Below, one piece after another: positions 7,691 to 53,602 of a DNA stretch of 64,000 nucleotides. Each line of letters starts with the position of its first letter. Within the stretch, counting starts at the first letter, position 1. The stretch is from sequence record PQ390715.1; one strand, written 5' to 3'. The position numbers and the translations under genes were made by a program. The notes beneath the pieces were generated by a model, which searched no databases, was not told the origin of the DNA, and saw only the letters and a program-made list of their open reading frames with translations.

Positions 7691-8347
7691 TTATTTTTTA
7701 ACGTATCCTAGAACACGTTTAACTTTCTTTTCATTCTCAGAAAGCCATGTTTTCATTTCTTCTTTTGAACTAAAGTATTTAGTACCCACAGTTCCGCGAA
7801 TACTTTCCATTTTTACACCAACTTTACTTGGTTTAACAGATTCTTTCATTTCACGTTCAGTTGGTACTGGCTCAGAGATAATGTCTTCTTCAAAGTCTGC
7901 GTCTGCATCCATATCAAAAGTTGGGGTATCTGCTGCAATATCAATATCAACATCTTCACTTCCAATATCAGAAACATCTGGACCGTCAGTGATATCACCA
8001 GTTAGTTTAAGTGTTTCAGTACTGATTTTGTCTTTTACATCCATTAAGGTAGTAACTGCATGTTGTAGTAGATGGCGAACATTATCACTAAAATTTTGTG
8101 CAGCATCTAGACCTTGCTCGGCTTTAATACGGTCAAGTAGTGGGCCTAGTACGTCAACACCCATGTTGTTAATAACCTCAGATTGACGTTGGAGTTTATC
8201 CACAATCTCACCTTTTACTGAAAGAACAATTTCTGCTTTTTCAATATTAGATTCATTTAGTTGAATAAACTTCATAGCTTCTGCACGAGAAGCTGCTTCC
8301 ATTAGTTTTTTATATTTTGACATTTGTATTTCCTTATAAAATATCAC
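7691..8347 (-). CDS. Hypothetical, probable virion (head) protein
   Basis: LNES/MKES/KMES motifs and an acidic linker. Confidence 0.6.
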   Translation of the reverse strand: MIFYKEIQMSKYKKLMEAASRAEAMKFIQLNESNIEKAEIVLSVKGEIVDKLQRQSEVINNMGVDVLGPLLDRIKAEQGLDAAQNFSDNVRHLLQHAVTTLMDVKDKISTETLKLTGDITDGPDVSDIGSEDVDIDIAADTPTFDMDADADFEEDIISEPVPTEREMKESVKPSKVGVKMESIRGTVGTKYFSSKEEMKTWLSENEKKVKRVLGYVKK

Positions 8348-8355
8348 TCATTTAT

Positions 8356-9027
8356 TTACTTTATATAACCTTCGCCTTTTAGAAAGTTTAATACACGCTC
8401 TTTTAATTTATACGCTTCAGCTTTCTTTTCTGCAATAATTATATCTAAATCTTTTGCTTCATCATACTTCGATTCATTAAGTACGCGTTGACGTTTCTGG
8501 GCTGCTTTCAATGCTTCACTAATCACATTCGTGTATTGAAGACCCGAACTGATTATACCAAGTACTTTTGCATCTGTCAACATTCTTCCTTCATTGAGAA
8601 GATTAACTAATGTAAGTGCTGCTTCATACATCATAATATTATTCATGATAATTTGTGAACTATGATTACACTTAATGCTATAAACTTTAGTAGATTTAGT
8701 ACCTTGTACTTTTTCTTCCACTAAACTCCAATTAGTTTTTGGTTTAAGAGGTGCTTGTGATGGTCGTGGCGAAGGTACTGGTGAATTCCCTGATAAATGT
8801 TCATTATACGGAGAATTGTATTGAACCATATGTGGATGTTGTGGTTCACCATAATCCATACCTGCTTCATTTAATGAAGTTAAAATAGAAGCCATAGCAC
8901 CGATATCACCACCAGTTTTATATGGAACCCCCGATGCGTTATGTGTTTCACCAGCTTCAATGTCATTCAATCCACTTAACAAATCAGCCATCTGATTAAC
9001 TGATTGTTGATCATATTCGTAATTCAT
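8356..9027 (-). CDS. Hypothetical, probable virion (head) protein
   Basis: LNEA/LNEG/LNES motifs; part of a coupled gene run. Confidence 0.6.
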   Translation of the reverse strand: MNYEYDQQSVNQMADLLSGLNDIEAGETHNASGVPYKTGGDIGAMASILTSLNEAGMDYGEPQHPHMVQYNSPYNEHLSGNSPVPSPRPSQAPLKPKTNWSLVEEKVQGTKSTKVYSIKCNHSSQIIMNNIMMYEAALTLVNLLNEGRMLTDAKVLGIISSGLQYTNVISEALKAAQKRQRVLNESKYDEAKDLDIIIAEKKAEAYKLKERVLNFLKGEGYIK

Positions 9028-18521: not shown

Positions 18522-18555
18522 TTTATTTTACATCCTTGTTGTTGTCATATGACAC

Positions 18556-18584
18556 ATTATATCACAAACAGCGGGTTTATCCCG
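18556..18584 (-). promoter_or_regulatory. Phage promoter CGGGATA-N16-TATAAT overlapping a hairpin
   Basis: Motif copy whose -35 lies in ACAGCGGG-tttat-CCCGCTGT at the end of uvsW. Confidence 0.7.
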
Positions 18585-23644: not shown

Positions 23645-23731
23645 ATATATCTTCCTTGATTTTGGGTTTCTTTGTTATTTGTTAATTGGCTTCAATGTTT
23701 CAGAAACTTCATTGTTCCTTCAACGTTTTAC

Positions 23732-23760
23732 ATTATAGCACAGGTTTTTATACTGTCCCA
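23732..23760 (-). promoter_or_regulatory. Phage promoter TGGGACA-N16-TATAAT (gp32 proximal)
   Basis: Exact motif copy. Confidence 0.85.
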
Positions 23761-23771
23761 TATTTTTTTAA

Positions 23772-29029
<5,258 letters not shown>

Positions 29030-39491: not shown

Positions 39492-40490
39492 TTACTTAGT
39501 TTTCCATTCTTTTATCATGGATAGTACTAATACCAAATCTTCTTCATTGAAAGTTTCAGTGTATCCATCAGGGAAATCTTCTTTTTCAACAACTTTATTA
39601 GTTATAGTACCTTTTATTTTTTGTTCGAGGTCTTGTGCTTCTCTTCGTGTTTCAAAGTTTTCAATTAACAAAACATCATGTTCAGTATGAGCATAATGTT
39701 TTTGTTGACTAATTCTACGATTGATATCATTAGTTACACCCAATTTATAAAATACACCTTTTGTTGGGTGAGTTATTTTTTGTACATATAAAGTTGATGG
39801 TTCACGCATAGTACCTTCACTTTCGTTACATACGGGGCAATGTTCTCGGTTAGTTTTTCTGAAGTTTGCTAATGATTTATAAATTTTTATATCTTTGTGA
39901 AGTGAGCACCCAAATACACACTCGGTAAGATGATAATCAAACGTTTCATCATATTGAAAATCATCATATGTGTACTTGTCACCATGAATTTTCATCAACT
40001 CTTTTTTCATAATATTTGTATCTTTTCGTTTAGAAGAAATCATTCGTTCTTTGCCGCATTCTAAACATCCAGCGTTTTTACCAACAAATCCATCATATGA
40101 AATTTCAAATTCCAAATCATGCTTATAACATACGAACTTTACTTTTGAATTTTTCTTATCAACATAATAGCAGGTAGAAATATATTCCCACGGTTTGTTC
40201 TCATTTTGTATTCGTGACAAACATGCATGTTTATATTGACTTTCAGTTTTAGGAACACTAGTCCCGTTCTGCTGTTTCATTATACCACAATGTTGACATT
40301 TTTTTCTTGATGAGAAGTTATCGATACTACACGACAATATAGAAGATTTACAATCCCAGCATGTGTATGAAAAATTACTTTTGGCATTTTTAAAATTAAT
40401 TATTTTATGAAATACAATGTTTAAGTTGTTAGTTTTTATGATGGTAAGAATCTTGTCTACGTAATATTGTTCATCGAATTTAGAAGCCAT
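39492..40490 (-). CDS. Putative homing endonuclease: zinc-ribbon repeats plus C-terminal GIY-YIG/T5orf172 domain
   Basis: Three Cys/His zinc modules (CWDC..CQHC; CYKH..CLEC; CSLH..CPVC), HGDKYTY motif, LYV...YKLGVTNDINRRI. Confidence 0.75.
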   Translation of the reverse strand: MASKFDEQYYVDKILTIIKTNNLNIVFHKIINFKNAKSNFSYTCWDCKSSILSCSIDNFSSRKKCQHCGIMKQQNGTSVPKTESQYKHACLSRIQNENKPWEYISTCYYVDKKNSKVKFVCYKHDLEFEISYDGFVGKNAGCLECGKERMISSKRKDTNIMKKELMKIHGDKYTYDDFQYDETFDYHLTECVFGCSLHKDIKIYKSLANFRKTNREHCPVCNESEGTMREPSTLYVQKITHPTKGVFYKLGVTNDINRRISQQKHYAHTEHDVLLIENFETRREAQDLEQKIKGTITNKVVEKEDFPDGYTETFNEEDLVLVLSMIKEWKTK

Positions 40491-49059: not shown

Positions 49060-49896
49060 ATGGCTATGAATCCACTTGCTAAGTACACTAAAATTGAAGA
49101 GATCAGTACTAAGTTAGTTACAAACGGCGTTATTCCTTATAAAGAAGGAGTTCTAGGTCCAAAAGGTGTCAAATGTGGAGTTTGTGCACGTAGTGCACGT
49201 GATGAAATGACACTTAATACCCCCGATATGTTACTAAACGGAGATGCAGTATCCCGTGTTATTGAAAACTGTGTTCCTAATGTAATTGACGCTGATGAGT
49301 TGTATGTAAATGACGTTGAAATGCTTCTTATTGCTATTAAAGTTGCTTCTAAAGAAGAAACATATGATATTAACGTTGTATGTCCTGAATGTGAAAAAGA
49401 AGGTCGATTTGAACGTAATCTATCATATCTTCTTGAAACTGCACAAGCATTTGAAGAAATCCCATCAATTGATTTAGATAATGGACTCCGTTTAGAATTT
49501 AGACCACTGACATGGAAAGAATATTCATCGTTTGCTGAACGCATGTTCAGTGAGCAGCAGAAGACTAAGTTTCTTGAAACTGCTGATATTGATAAAGATG
49601 AAAAAGTAAAAATATTTTCTGAAGTATTTGAAAACATGGCTCAACTTAACTTCGATATGATTGGTGGAGTTATTGCAAAAATTATAACACCAGATGGTGA
49701 TGAAGTAGTTGAAAAAGAATTTATTAATGAATGGCTTGGACAACAATCGAAGGGAGTACTTAAACTAATTCGTGAAAAAATGGATGAAGTACTTGAAATT
49801 GGTGTATCTCATAGTATGGAAGTAGAATGTGATGGATGTAATCATCAATGGGAAATTGATGGACTAAAATATGATCCTAGTCATTTTTTCGAGTAA
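49060..49896 (+). CDS. Baseplate hub assembly protein (gp26-like)
   Basis: NPLAKY, LLNGDA..VIENCVP, D...LLIAIKVAS, CPEC and CDGC. Confidence 0.75.
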   Translation: MAMNPLAKYTKIEEISTKLVTNGVIPYKEGVLGPKGVKCGVCARSARDEMTLNTPDMLLNGDAVSRVIENCVPNVIDADELYVNDVEMLLIAIKVASKEETYDINVVCPECEKEGRFERNLSYLLETAQAFEEIPSIDLDNGLRLEFRPLTWKEYSSFAERMFSEQQKTKFLETADIDKDEKVKIFSEVFENMAQLNFDMIGGVIAKIITPDGDEVVEKEFINEWLGQQSKGVLKLIREKMDEVLEIGVSHSMEVECDGCNHQWEIDGLKYDPSHFFE

Positions 49897-50105
49897 TGCT
49901 TCTCCAGTCATCTCCTGAAGAAATACAAGAAGTACTGAAGGAGATAGAACTGAATAAGTCAGAAATCAAAAATGCACTAATGGAATGTTCTGTATATATG
50001 GATAACATTGACTATGGAACACTCCTTAATATGCCATTAATAGATAGAGACTTATTAGTTAAGTCTTTTAATAAAAAAATTAAAAAACAAAACGAGAAGC
50101 ACTAA
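49896..50105 (+). CDS. Small baseplate hub assembly / tape-measure chaperone-like protein (gp51-like)
   Basis: IDYGTLLNMPLIDRDLL; coupled to the gp26-like gene. Confidence 0.55.
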   Translation: MLLQSSPEEIQEVLKEIELNKSEIKNALMECSVYMDNIDYGTLLNMPLIDRDLLVKSFNKKIKKQNEKH

Positions 50106-50115
50106 TTTTCATATA

Positions 50116-50145
50116 GCCAGCACATTGTTGCTGGTTTTTTTTTTT
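50116..50145 (+). terminator. Intrinsic terminator
   Basis: CCAGCA-N6-TGCTGG followed by 11 T. Confidence 0.85.
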
Positions 50146-50309
50146 GGTTTTAAACTACAGAATTATTTGAATTGAATTATGAAAGGATTAATTTTAATAT
50201 TATTGGATTCATCTAACTCATTTCATTCGTTAGCTGAAGAATATTCGTTACTACGTAACTCATATTCATTTAATTAAATTAATTATAAAGAACTTTAAAA
50301 GATTTAATA

Positions 50310-50818
50310 CTTGACGGGATTTGTTGAGGACATTTTCATCCCCCCGCAGGGGAATGAAGACAATAAAAAAGAGACAATGAAGTCTCTATTTCTTGACGCT
50401 GATGGTTTCAGCATTTATTGTATTGCGAATTTCTTAAAAATATATTAAGAACGAAAGCGGGTTGCTCTGTTTCTCTCTATCGCAGTCATGTGCAACGGTC
50501 GTCAGTCTTAATCATCCTGACACTCACCTGAAAGTCTATACAATCAAACTTCAGGCTGTTTATTAAAATCACTTAATAAACTCCCTTAGCAAATCTGGTA
50601 AGGTGCGATCCTTATATGTCTATCTAGGAACTCTCTGTATGCTTATCGGAGTTCTTTATTGAGCCGCATTGCCGTGAGGGGTTCAAACTATGCCCACATC
50701 TAACGGGTTTCTTTTGCTCATCGCACTGTTGAACTGCTCATCTGCCATCTACATTTTCGATAGGATCAGGTTCTAATTTATATGCATTTCTGCATTCAAC
50801 AGGATTGTCATTACTACA
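50310..50818 (-). ncRNA. Candidate large structured non-coding RNA (about 450-510 nt)
   Basis: Conserved promoter upstream, no ORF of 60 aa or more, more than ten helices whose G-U pairs and GNRA loops favour the minus strand, terminator-like stem plus U6 at 50365-50387. Confidence 0.7.
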
Positions 50819-50824
50819 ACAAAC

Positions 50825-50853
50825 ATTATAGCACAAACTTTAAAGTTGTCTCA
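50825..50853 (-). promoter_or_regulatory. Phage promoter TGAGACA-N16-TATAAT pointing into the ORF-free region
   Basis: Exact motif copy. Confidence 0.85.
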
Positions 50854-50944
50854 CTATTTTTATAAAAATATTCATTAAGTACTTAAAATATTGCAAATAA
50901 CTAATCTATAAATATTTTGATAACAAATAGTTTGGTGAGGAATT

Positions 50945-51436
50945 ATGAAAAAAAGATTAAAAGATAGTAAGGATGCTGCAAACTATCGAAACGAATTGCT
51001 AAAGAAACAAAATGGAATAGATCCTATAATTAAAGAACCAATAACTAAACCAGTACTAGATCACTACCACTATGGTAACCAACATTGTAGACAAGTTCTT
51101 CAAAATGAAGTCAATGCTTGGGAAGGAAAGGTACAAAACAGCTTCAATCGATATATGAAGCACTTAACTGATAAACCATTATATGAGGTACTCAGAAATC
51201 TTGCTGATTACTTAGAGCGTAATAACAGCATTCCTGACGATGAACAAGTTATACATCACACTGCACTAACTGTGGATGTTAATAAGTTTAAAAGGCTTCC
51301 AGCAACACAGCAAAACGCGATTCTGGAAGGGTTAGGAGTTGTCCCTGGTAGTAACACTACTGCTCGTGTAAAGCAAGCTAGAAAGCTGATTAAGGACGGT
51401 AAATTAAATATGGTTGATATAAAAAAAGGGAGCTAA
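50945..51436 (+). CDS. Recombination endonuclease VII-like (T4 gp49) lacking zinc cysteines
   Basis: QNG..., VLDHYH, NAWEGKV, LRNLADYL, IHH align to gp49; the four Cys are replaced. Confidence 0.8.
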   Translation: MKKRLKDSKDAANYRNELLKKQNGIDPIIKEPITKPVLDHYHYGNQHCRQVLQNEVNAWEGKVQNSFNRYMKHLTDKPLYEVLRNLADYLERNNSIPDDEQVIHHTALTVDVNKFKRLPATQQNAILEGLGVVPGSNTTARVKQARKLIKDGKLNMVDIKKGS

Positions 51437-51446
51437 GGCTCCCTTT
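51421..51446. terminator. Bidirectional terminator
   Basis: AAAGGGAGC-taag-GCTCCCTTT between convergent genes. Confidence 0.8.
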
Positions 51447-51454
51447 ATCTTTAA

Positions 51455-53602
51455 TTAGAAAACATCGTCAAGGGTTGCATATTCAACAGTACTGAAACCG
51501 TCCTCTTTAACAACTTTGAGGATTTTTTCAGTCTTAGATAGTAACTCTTCTCTGTGGGAAATAGCATAAACGTTCTTACCACGTACAGCAGCCATATCTT
51601 GGAAGATAGACCACACACGTAGAACACCACTTGAGTCAAGACCTTGGTCAATCATCTCATCAATGATAAGAATATTAATACTTTGGTATAATGACTCATA
51701 TGTATCACGGAAAGCACAAGATAATGCGATGTTTACCCTTGTACGCTCACCTCTACTAAGCTGTTTATAGTCAAAGTACTGTCCACTCTTCTCAATTTCA
51801 ACACTCAAATCATTCAAAAACACAACATTATGCTCAGAACCGCACATATCGATATAGTACTGAAGTCGTGTATTCAAATATGAGATATTTTGCTCAATAA
51901 TACGTTTACGGACATAAGAATCCTTGTTTAAAAGTAATTTAACCAAGAAATCTTGGTGATTTGACATTTTATCAAGATTATTATAGTCGCTATAATCGAT
52001 TGGTACTAAAGAATCAGTCTTCAGGGTATTAATTTGGCTAATAAATGTGTTAGTAGTCTTCAATTCACGATCTAATTGCTGTGATAATGAATTTACAGTC
52101 ATTTCTAACTCTTTAACTTCATATTTGTTTAATGTATCTGGAACTTCCATTAGTTCATATGAGTTAAGTTCATCATATGATGACATAAGTTCATTTGCAT
52201 AGATGTTTATTTGTTCTTCTTCACTCTTTCTGACCAATTCTTGAAGCTTATGTTCATGCATTTGTGCTTCTGAAAGTGTATTATAATATGTCACGGGCTT
52301 AGGTGGCATATCAAAAATCTCAATACTATCAATTTCTTGAAGTAATGTTTCAATTTCAGAAGAAGAACTATCAATTTTAGCTTGAAGATCATTAATAGTA
52401 CTTTGGATTTTGTCTTTAATTGAAGAAGTATGTTCGTTATGTTCTAATTCAGACATACAAAGTGGACATTTGCTGTTTTCAACTGTTGATAATTTGTCAA
52501 TTTCAGCATTAATTGAACATTCATATCCTTTTAAAGCTATTTTTAGTGAGTTTAGTTTTTGTTCTTTGAAACGTTTTTGGTTATTATTCTCTTTTAGAAT
52601 ACCCTCTAACTGTTTCCATATCTCCAACTCATTATGATTTTCCAATTCTGCACTAATATCAATAGTTTTTAGCTTATCAATGCTTAGATTTAATGCTCTT
52701 TTAGATCTTTCAAGTTCACGGTCATATGCATCAAATTTTAAAGCCAACTCTTGTACACGGCGTTCGATTTCCCCACGCTTTGCGTTATGAATAAGAGCTT
52801 TCTCTTTTATATCAGCAGCTTCATAGAGGTCATTAAAGTCTAAAGTTTTATATATATTCAACTCTTCATTTAACTTAGATACTCTATTATTTTTATCAAT
52901 TTCAAACTGGTTTGCCTGTTCTTGTAGTGTCTCAATACTTTTTTGAATACGTTCATTACTTGCAGCTACAGTTTCATTTTTGAACTTTTCTTGTTCGGCT
53001 AAACGTTTAGTATCCTTATACATCTCCTTTAGCATTTCAGCTTTTTCCGTCAACTGTGTTATTCCAAGAAGTTCTTCTATCATATCACGTTGTTTTTGTG
53101 TGGATAAAGCTAAGAAAGGTTCAACGTTAGCATTCAGTACTACAATATGTTCAAATAATAATTGAGATATACCAAGAATTTCATTCAAATCTTCTTGTGT
53201 GTCTTTCTTTTCTCCCCTTGATTCATCTTCAATTTTATTATCTTTACCTAAAGTAACAAAATTGAAATACGTGGGACTTCTCCCACGTTCAACCAGATAT
53301 TGTACACCATCTTTTTCAAACTCTACAACTACTTCACAATTTTTGCCATTAGTTTTATTGACTAGGTTCGGAATTTTAATATCATTACCAATACTTTTAC
53401 CAAATAATCCAAAAACTAATCCTTGAATAATAGCACTTTTCCCTACACCATTTCGACGTCCGGTACTGTCACCACCTTCAATAACTGCATCATTATTTTG
53501 ACCCAGTACTAATGAAATGTCGGAACCATTCAAATCAATTGATTGTGGTGCATTACCAAATGAAAAGAAGTTCCTCATAGATATACGTGTAATGTTTAGC
53601 AT
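51455..53602 (-). CDS. SbcC/Rad50-like recombination ATPase (T4 gp46)
   Basis: NFFSFG, NGVGKS, coiled coil with CPLC hook, LSRGE, IIDE. Confidence 0.95.
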   Translation of the reverse strand: MLNITRISMRNFFSFGNAPQSIDLNGSDISLVLGQNNDAVIEGGDSTGRRNGVGKSAIIQGLVFGLFGKSIGNDIKIPNLVNKTNGKNCEVVVEFEKDGVQYLVERGRSPTYFNFVTLGKDNKIEDESRGEKKDTQEDLNEILGISQLLFEHIVVLNANVEPFLALSTQKQRDMIEELLGITQLTEKAEMLKEMYKDTKRLAEQEKFKNETVAASNERIQKSIETLQEQANQFEIDKNNRVSKLNEELNIYKTLDFNDLYEAADIKEKALIHNAKRGEIERRVQELALKFDAYDRELERSKRALNLSIDKLKTIDISAELENHNELEIWKQLEGILKENNNQKRFKEQKLNSLKIALKGYECSINAEIDKLSTVENSKCPLCMSELEHNEHTSSIKDKIQSTINDLQAKIDSSSSEIETLLQEIDSIEIFDMPPKPVTYYNTLSEAQMHEHKLQELVRKSEEEQINIYANELMSSYDELNSYELMEVPDTLNKYEVKELEMTVNSLSQQLDRELKTTNTFISQINTLKTDSLVPIDYSDYNNLDKMSNHQDFLVKLLLNKDSYVRKRIIEQNISYLNTRLQYYIDMCGSEHNVVFLNDLSVEIEKSGQYFDYKQLSRGERTRVNIALSCAFRDTYESLYQSINILIIDEMIDQGLDSSGVLRVWSIFQDMAAVRGKNVYAISHREELLSKTEKILKVVKEDGFSTVEYATLDDVF

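Follow-up and report, generated by a model that had tools for sequence, protein, structure and literature searches.

Large, intricately folded RNAs of bacteria and phages are rare, and the few known classes (OLE, ROOL, GOLLD and raiA) have proved hard to study. ROOL and GOLLD are free-standing, phage- or prophage-borne RNAs of several hundred nucleotides with many covariation-backed helices and pseudoknots (bioRxiv 10.1101/2024.12.08.627333). Four long non-coding RNAs without open reading frames (ORFs), ncRNA001-004 of 236-619 nt, have been defined by RNA-seq in the Pseudomonas jumbo phage PA5oct, a relative of the RaK2 group, and two of them are found at 2-5% of the phage reads (PMC7318152). 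Here we analyse a 64,000-nucleotide stretch of sequence record PQ390715.1 (the window) and describe an element at 50304-50818 on its minus strand that, judged from its sequence, is a free-standing gene for a non-coding RNA of about 510 nt with its own promoter. The family to which the element belongs is like ROOL and GOLLD in the features named above, as its members of about 510 nt have 18 helices and three pseudoknots and are carried by jumbo phages and integrative islands. Unlike ROOL and GOLLD, it matches neither of their covariance models even at permissive thresholds, occurs in phages and islands of Enterobacterales, has four to five diverged paralogs per phage genome and is not found beside tRNA genes. 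We propose, and give the proposal about an even chance, that the folded RNA may work in trans, by itself or together with host factors, and serve as a scaffold or particle, as has been proposed for ROOL and GOLLD.

The gene lies in the longest ORF-free stretch of the window, which was defined as containing no ATG-initiated ORF of 50 amino acids or more. As a sequence-only reading of the window had stated, this stretch (50106-50944; 839 nt) is the only long one, the next largest being 218-250 nt. It is flanked by two plus-strand features, a 69-amino-acid ORF downstream of a baseplate-hub (gp51-like) gene and an endonuclease VII gene. The same reading had called the segment more GC-rich than its flanks, which holds both in the window (0.385-0.42 at 50300-50799 versus 0.235-0.25) and family-wide (0.41 in the body versus 0.30-0.32 in the flanks). 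Over the 851 bases around the element, identity is 100% with Escherichia phage SHEFM2K and 99.4-99.9% with PBECO4, 121Q, phAPEC6 and further Asteriusvirus records; on this basis, the source of the window is assigned to Asteriusvirus, a PBECO4/121Q-like member of the RaK2-like jumbo coliphage group with genomes of about 350 kb.

On the minus strand, a predicted sigma-70-type promoter (50825-50854) points into the gap. It consists of a -35-like GTGAGA/GAGACA, a spacer of 16-18 nt and a TG-extended TATAAT at 50830-50825, with 10 of 12 consensus matches and the TG present, and TATAAT is found at a similar upstream distance in most family members. Its core, TGTGnTATAATG, occurs at eight sites in the window where 1.5 are expected, while the full 16-mer occurs once. 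The core likely represents a class of extended -10 phage promoters, and its recurrence places the promoter in a phage promoter type rather than making it an exact copy of another site; the sequence-only reading was therefore right about a minus-strand promoter, but not about an exact phage-promoter copy. The minus-strand sites of TGTGnTATAATG include 1615-1630, 18555-18570, 23731-23746, 23807-23822 and 40278-40293. With the 5' end inferred about 7 nt after the -10 element and the 3' end placed where family conservation stops, the RNA gene would span 50818 to 50304; the nhmmer match covers 50806-50304, and conservation in other genera by blastn covers about 50303-50788.

Several results bear on the strand and the non-coding character of the gene. 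The z-score of the minimum free energy is -4.31 on the minus strand (-137.3 kcal/mol) and -2.92 on the plus strand. In the paired columns of the family alignment, 306 cells are G-U and 69 are A-C, so the minus strand is the RNA strand, in agreement with the promoter direction, as the sequence-only reading had argued from G-U closures seen on that strand only. A protein-coding gene or pseudogene was ruled out: no conserved reading frame was found in the family, the longest stop-free stretches (median of 81 amino acids versus 68 in shuffled sequences) vary in strand and frame, and insertions and deletions are not multiples of three. ARAGORN found no tRNA or tmRNA gene at 49500-51500, which together with the searches against Rfam 15 bears out the earlier remark that signatures of tRNA, tmRNA, RNase P and group I introns are lacking.

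Homologs were collected from phage records with blastn and, among IMG/VR, metagenomes and GTDB genomes, with pattern scans followed by nhmmer confirmation. The 83 full-length matches represent 70 distinct sequences, which form 49 clusters at 96% identity. One representative per cluster, including the window copy (50289-50820, minus strand), was aligned with MAFFT to give alignment A1, in which pairs were curated by hand and variable inserts are poorly aligned. RNAalifold predicted 59 pairs in A1, 42 of them with changes on both sides, and scans for mutual information and stacked pairs added the long-range pairings PK1, PK2 and P1 and a three-pair tertiary contact. In the resulting curated structure of 85 pairs, 93.4% of the cells are paired across the 49 members, compared with 75.1% in shuffled and 39-44% in slid controls; 69 of the 85 pairs show changes on both sides where 47.9 are expected, the covariation score is 0.508 versus 0.181, and in 500 shuffles no measure ever came up to its observed value. 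Covariation among these non-redundant homologs, which include syntenic loci, is thus strong. The RNA is a compact molecule in which about 18 helices are combined with a tertiary contact and three pseudoknots (P1, PK1 and PK2), and its fold is under strong selection. Loops and junctions GAAAAUGUA, GAUGAG, AAACAGAGCAACCCG, CUAAGGGAG and CGACCGUUGC are invariant. Two pairings were dropped during curation: an RNAalifold helix (559-561 x 571-573), which was replaced by the co-varying PK2, and a pairing (107-109 x 785-787) that is invariant and never varies.

In the 5' half of the molecule (all features on the minus strand), the pseudoknot P1 (50727-50801) pairs CUGUUGAA (50801-50795) with UUCAACAG (50732-50727) in the loop of hairpin Hb (50737-50735 / 50725-50723; two of three pairs changed on both sides). 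P1 corresponds to A1 columns 26-32 x 115-121, has six of seven pairs changed on both sides and encloses a GAAA-capped hairpin at 50794-50783. Helix Ha (CC.AUC/GAUGG; 50745-50764) closes the conserved 9-nt loop GAAAAUGUA, all five of its pairs being changed on both sides and 94.7% being paired. The Hc domain (UGAGC/GCUCA; 50660-50720), with 100% pairing and four of five pairs co-varying, contains helix Hd (CCCG.../...CGG; 50706-50703 / 50675-50672; 99.5% paired) and is crossed by the tertiary contact AUG x CAU (50669-50667 x 50618-50616), which was detected by the mutual-information scan and whose A1 columns 222/291 are GC in 33 and AU in 14 sequences. Hairpin He (GAACUC/GAGUUC; 50628-50654) has five of five pairs changed on both sides, while the small hairpin UAAGG-AUCGCA-CCUUA (50600-50614) is weak, with 78.6% pairing and one pair changed on both sides.

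Further toward the 3' end, hairpin Hm (GUUUAUUAA/UUAAUAAAC; 50559-50581) has six of six co-varying pairs at the helix base and marks the site at which other members carry a large inserted module. The long hairpin Hf (CCUGAAGUUU.../...GACUUUCAGG; 50526-50557), in which all 12 pairs are changed on both sides, provides through its loop the 5' strand of the pseudoknot PK1 (AUUGUAU, 50544-50538 x AUACAAU, 50423-50417). PK1 is 99.7% paired with seven of seven pairs co-varying, its 3' strand lies just 3' of helix Hi, and it co-varies in a divergent clade of the family as well. Hairpin Hg (GUCAG/CUGAC; 50501-50521; four of four pairs co-varying) is followed by the pseudoknot PK2 (GUUGC, 50496-50492 x GCAAC, 50465-50461), which is 100% paired with three of five pairs co-varying and whose GCAAC is part of AAACAGAGCAACCCG, the invariant loop of 15 nt that is closed by hairpin Hj (50477-50473 / 50457-50453; three of five). 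Helix Hi (50484-50480 / 50428-50424; five of five) encloses Hj and hairpin Hk (UUCUUAA/UUAAGAA; 50450-50432), whose base has two of two pairs co-varying. Nine of the 12 helices named in the sequence-only reading fall on co-varying pairings, namely CUGUUGAA/UUCAACAG, GAACUC/GAGUUC, CCUUA/UAAGG (weakly), GUUUAUUAA/UUAAUAAAC, CCUGAA/UUCAGG, GUCAG/CUGAC, GUUGC/GCAAC, UUCUUAA/UUAAGAA and the terminator AGAGAC/GUCUCU with its U6. Covariation gives no support to the long-range GAUCCU/AGGAUC pairing, which is incompatible with two co-varying helices, AUGCUGA/UCAGCGU is in a register that is not conserved across homologs, and the G-run hairpin is conserved with one-sided changes. Some members carry a hairpin module, an A/U-rich stem capped by the loop UACAAUAUAG(A/U)U(C/G)CGUCC, which occurs at two insertion positions differing by member (A1 columns 424-476 and 612-655; for example, L006:45347-45948 and L030:6228-6783). 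It is not present in the window copy, and its insertion at two different positions suggests a portable binding or docking module.

No known RNA family accounts for this fold. At the gathering score, Rfam 15 gave no match in the whole window, and at E values of up to 10 only terminator-like chance matches were found in 50000-51000; 16 divergent members gave no consistent Rfam match at E values of up to 5. By eye, AACAGAGCAAC, UAAGGGAG, AGAAACCCGUUAG and AUAUAAGG recall what we take to be CR-II, CR-III, CR-V and L15 of RNase P, which serves as a lead only. A bacterial RNase P RNA was rejected, as the order of these motifs is not colinear, no P4-like helix was identified and there was no Rfam match at E values of up to 10 in the window or of up to 5 in the 16 other members. 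Group I and group II introns were rejected for lack of an Rfam match and because the four loci discussed below are all intergenic. Guide RNAs of recombinases or nucleases (IS110 bridge RNA and omega RNA) were rejected because there is no constant protein neighbour and the integrase of the bacterial islands is a serine or a tyrosine enzyme. The four PA5oct RNAs are the nearest published analogue in a related phage in that several transcribed regions are free of ORFs (PMC7318152). They show no sequence similarity to the family (nhmmer --max, E values of up to 10) and have none of its invariant motifs. A description of the family was not found in Rfam 15, genome annotations or the searchable literature, and the family may be among the more than 10,000 unnamed motifs reported in PMC10690425. 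Covariation and these searches thus uphold what the sequence-only reading had put forward, a real, promoter-driven, large and ornate minus-strand phage RNA that has not been described.

A comparison by blastn with 50,697 phage records located the element in 71-72 RaK2-like jumbo phages only, whose hosts are Escherichia, Salmonella, Klebsiella, Cronobacter, Pectobacterium, Serratia, Yersinia, Erwinia and Xanthomonas-labelled isolates. Each of these records has two to five matching places, where copy numbers above four are blastn place counts partly verified by profile search. The window itself contains a single copy, as an nhmmer profile search found no second one in the 64 kb. The unannotated Asteriusvirus record EC22.5-2 has four copies at 90.0, 143.5, 223.1 and 333.3 kb of 352 kb, all on one strand and with 70-85% mutual identity. 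In 121Q, one copy follows the phage sigma-factor gene, one precedes gp416/Dam methylase, and the other two are flanked by gp515 and gp517 and by endonuclease VII and gp595, respectively; no protein neighbour is conserved among the four loci. The endonuclease VII, Dam and sigma loci are occupied in several genera; the paralogs are therefore older than the split of these genera, and each has long been retained. In phage RaK2, the Dam-near and sigma-near copies (L031:1204-1724 and L070:1740-2258) have identical 3' halves and different 5' halves, which indicates occasional recombination or gene conversion between paralogs. A divergent clade occurs in other large-phage contigs from metagenomes (L158, L192, L144, L174, L149 and L177); its members keep the core (PK1, PK2 and the G-run hairpin) and carry an extra conserved sequence after box X2. 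A Thg1-like gene is found near the copy of L177.

This distribution also bears on whether the element acts as DNA, as a packaging, recombination or protein-binding site or as a selfish repeat in which hairpins are incidental. Such an element would account for the identical direct repeats about 91 bp apart near the 3' end, which recall iterons or recombination sites, and for the occurrence in otherwise unrelated mobile elements. Several observations speak against it: G-U is accepted in compensatory changes on a single strand (306 versus 69), the long-range pseudoknots co-vary, the promoter is conserved, and the copies keep stable syntenic positions without scattered insertion. We consider a DNA-level element highly improbable.

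The family is common to jumbo phages and to bacterial chromosomes. Chromosomal members were identified in Citrobacter, Serratia (including a complete chromosome of S. fonticola), Enterobacter, Silvania and Buttiauxella, and two of 5,426 complete genomes of Escherichia coli carry the element, at which PGAP annotates nothing. These copies reside in small integrative islands of Enterobacterales with a single RNA copy. In 14-15 of 20 loci, the order is kept: an integrase is followed by the co-directional RNA gene, a convergent cI-like S24 repressor, a cro-like helix-turn-helix (HTH) protein, a membrane-like hypothetical protein of 286 amino acids, an LprI-like protein and a small resolvase. The integrase upstream of the RNA is a large serine recombinase in some islands and a tyrosine integrase in others. 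A fully visible island of about 11 kb (L200 3578-14464; Enterobacteriaceae chromosome CP193790.1; see also L201 and L135) contains a serine integrase, three ORFs, the RNA (7958-8524), the cI-like, HTH, 286-amino-acid and LprI-like proteins and the small resolvase, and terminates in the Kiwa defence genes KwaB/KwaA; no phage structural or Rep genes were recognisable in it. In the Serratia fonticola chromosome (L126 61-4195), the RNA is at the end opposite the serine recombinase, behind two ParB/RepB-like genes and immediately next to the rof-tilS genes of the chromosome. A 2.8-kb contig binned as Clostridium sp. UBA10317 (L127) has an island-type copy at least 96% identical to the Enterobacterales copies and is therefore probably mis-binned. 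Proteins encoded near the island copies have no homolog in the jumbo-phage genome.

The arrangement with the repressor raises the question of whether the RNA is a cis-acting or antisense regulator, whose folded body would decide whether transcription passes the terminator-like hairpin T1 and whose read-through transcripts would extend as antisense RNA into convergent neighbours, the cI gene in islands and the 69-amino-acid ORF and gp51-like gene in the window. The RNA is convergent with the cI-like repressor in 14 of the 20 island loci, at a distance of 190-940 nt downstream (mostly about 325 nt), the window copy (copy A of the four Asteriusvirus paralogs) is also convergent with its neighbours, and T1 is optional in the family. 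Against this, the genes downstream of copies B, C and D are unrelated and run in the same direction as the RNA, the cI gene is missing at that place in three islands, and the body has no resemblance to a known aptamer in Rfam. Regulation of a neighbouring gene is regarded as very improbable.

The 3' tail of the RNA consists of box X1 (CCAUCAGCGUCAAG; 50392-50405), the terminator-like hairpin T1 (AGAGAC-UUCAUU-GUCUCU followed by U6; 50364-50387), hairpin hp2 (UUCAUUCCCC-UGCG-GGGGGAUGAA; 50333-50359) and box X2 (CAAAUCCCGUCAAG; 50310-50323), just beyond which family conservation stops. T1 is found in about 33 of 49 members with changes in its stem sequence, while hp2 is 99.2% paired with one-sided C/U changes only, and G477-G481 of its G run are invariant. 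X1 and X2 (A1 columns 685-698 and 776-789) have the common pattern AYC(N)NCGUCAR about 91 nt apart and vary together in identity, without complementarity, both across the family and between the paralogs of one genome. At columns 688/780, 28 sequences have UU and 21 have CC; at columns 685/776, the counts are 37 for CC, eight for GG and three for AA, and at columns 697/788 they are 24 for AA and 22 for GG; the RaK2 lineage has CUUCAAG and the divergent clade ACCA(A)CGAAG in both boxes alike. On a tree built without the box columns, X1 and X2 changed together about nine times independently with no contrary case, where single column pairs are too small for significance. In the Asteriusvirus genome, both boxes of copy C depart from those of A, B and D, and the coupling is therefore a property of the single molecule. 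Mutual information, stacked-pair scans and duplex energies found no complementary third strand for X1/X2, and in pairing, the strand immediately 5' of X1 shows no preference for its own X2 over a foreign one.

Two identical boxes are also present in the CI RNA of phage P4 (seqA/seqB/seqC) and the c4 RNA of phage P1, RNAs of less than 100 nt in which a third, complementary box explains the coupling. The RNA described here is like them in having two identical boxes that change together and in occurring in the integrase/repressor region of integrative elements, and unlike them in that no complementary third box was found and Rfam gave no C4 match. A ribozyme or self-processing RNA would offer another account of the boxes: the conserved core would be catalytic and X1 and X2 would be two substrate or processing sites, between which a segment is released or at which the 3' end is set. 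The RNA has invariant nucleotides at its junctions and nested pseudoknots, as ribozymes typically do, and both boxes follow one pattern and change together. No Rfam ribozyme model was matched, even at E values of up to 5-10, an internal guide complementary to the boxes was not found, and no gene is interrupted, so that the RNA is no intron; catalysis of this kind is considered quite unlikely.

The size and promoter type of the element resemble those of ColE1 RNA II. As a replication primer, similar to RNA II or to the origin transcripts of T4, the RNA would remain in a persistent hybrid through the part close to its 3' end (the G-run hairpin and the boxes) and thereby prime DNA synthesis. The 350-kb genome would then have several origins, at its four to five copies, and the copy of an island would allow replication of a small Rep-less element. 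A predicted transcript of about 0.5 kb from a host-type promoter would be shared with RNA II, T4 origin transcripts and the RNA-based prophage origins that exist in mycobacteriophages (PMC7157519), as would its possible use by elements without a Rep protein. Conservation runs past T1 to the run of six Gs and the repeated box, the copies are spread round the genome (90, 143, 223 and 333 kb of 352 kb), islands lack a recognisable Rep gene, two ParB/RepB-like genes neighbour the RNA in one Serratia element, and 150 nt downstream of the window copy have 20% GC. The cumulative GC skew, however, has no inflection at the four copies, and the AT-rich downstream stretch is not general (0.30 versus 0.32 in other flanks). 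The sole antisense promoter-like site (50517-50544, plus strand) uses the variable PK1 loop as its -10 element, so there is no conserved counterpart of RNA I. Unlike RNA II, the family has neither a conserved antisense RNA I nor a signal of skew or an unwinding element, and its conserved tertiary fold is more elaborate, with three pseudoknots and invariant loops that far exceed the known needs of a primer. The boxes, moreover, co-vary per molecule though no element-encoded initiator is present. A primer is considered unlikely. The sequence-only reading had left a structural RNA or ribozyme and a replication primer side by side; the multi-pseudoknot fold favours a folded trans-acting RNA, and GC skew and downstream composition lend nothing to the primer.

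A folded RNA that acts in trans as a scaffold or particle is suggested because the neighbours are unrelated and sometimes convergent, because islands and jumbo phages share no element-encoded protein, and because three pseudoknots and invariant loops exceed what a leader, an antisense RNA or a primer needs. The lack of a protein common to the island neighbours and the jumbo-phage genome also points to action alone or via host factors. Under this proposal, host RNA polymerase would transcribe the gene from its own extended -10 promoter, and the folded RNA would itself be the product, which would bind a host component or self-assemble rather than regulate a neighbouring gene. The four paralogs of a genome would be non-redundant versions, and the 3' tail (X1, T1, hp2 and X2) may be a switch or handle in which the two boxes must stay identical.

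Several points weigh against such a scaffold or particle. Palindromic loops, a sign of self-assembly by kissing loops, are not enriched (6.1 versus 5.5 nt), and the identity-coupled boxes are unaccounted for by a simple scaffold model. In addition, hp2 and X2 lie beyond T1 and are more conserved than T1, so that either T1 leaks or hp2 and X2 may act at the DNA level or during transcription. A bolder extension, which we put forward as doubtful, is that the RNA may be a new functional RNA machine, either a ribozyme or a particle that self-assembles or captures host factors, of which RaK2-like phages would need four to five specialised versions. The island copy, found in small elements of Enterobacteriaceae that carry defence genes, could then be a mimic that interferes with the phage RNA or the phages' source, and the boxes could reflect templated copying, strand exchange between two equivalent sites or another mechanism so far undescribed in a structured RNA.

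Beyond what the sequence-only reading had noticed, the element is multi-copy, with four paralogs per genome, and common to bacterial integrative islands. The family connects phages that are lytic and of jumbo size with small integrative islands, and Kiwa anti-phage genes are present in at least one of these islands. It also offers unusually rich covariation, three pseudoknots and several long-lived paralogs per genome in hosts (E. coli, Klebsiella and Enterobacter) that make genetics, RNA-seq and cryo-electron microscopy directly feasible. Four intergenic gaps per Asteriusvirus genome, now blank or with spurious small ORFs, deserve annotation as RNA genes. In the window, public annotations leave the gap blank or fill it with PHANOTATE ORFs of 32-45 amino acids, and small ORFs are annotated at 50179-50277, 50311-50448, 50462-50566 and 50738-50836. 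Some annotations also call ORFs of 32-51 amino acids on the RNA genes (M2K_0516-0519 of SHEFM2K and gp516 of 121Q); their reading frames are unconserved, and they are probably spurious. The plus-strand operon of the gp51-like gene and the 69-amino-acid ORF ends in a strong terminator at 50115-50136, a hairpin (AGCCAGCA...UGCUGGUU) with a run of Ts after it, and all the weak sRNA-like Rfam matches at 50065-50150 are due to this hairpin.

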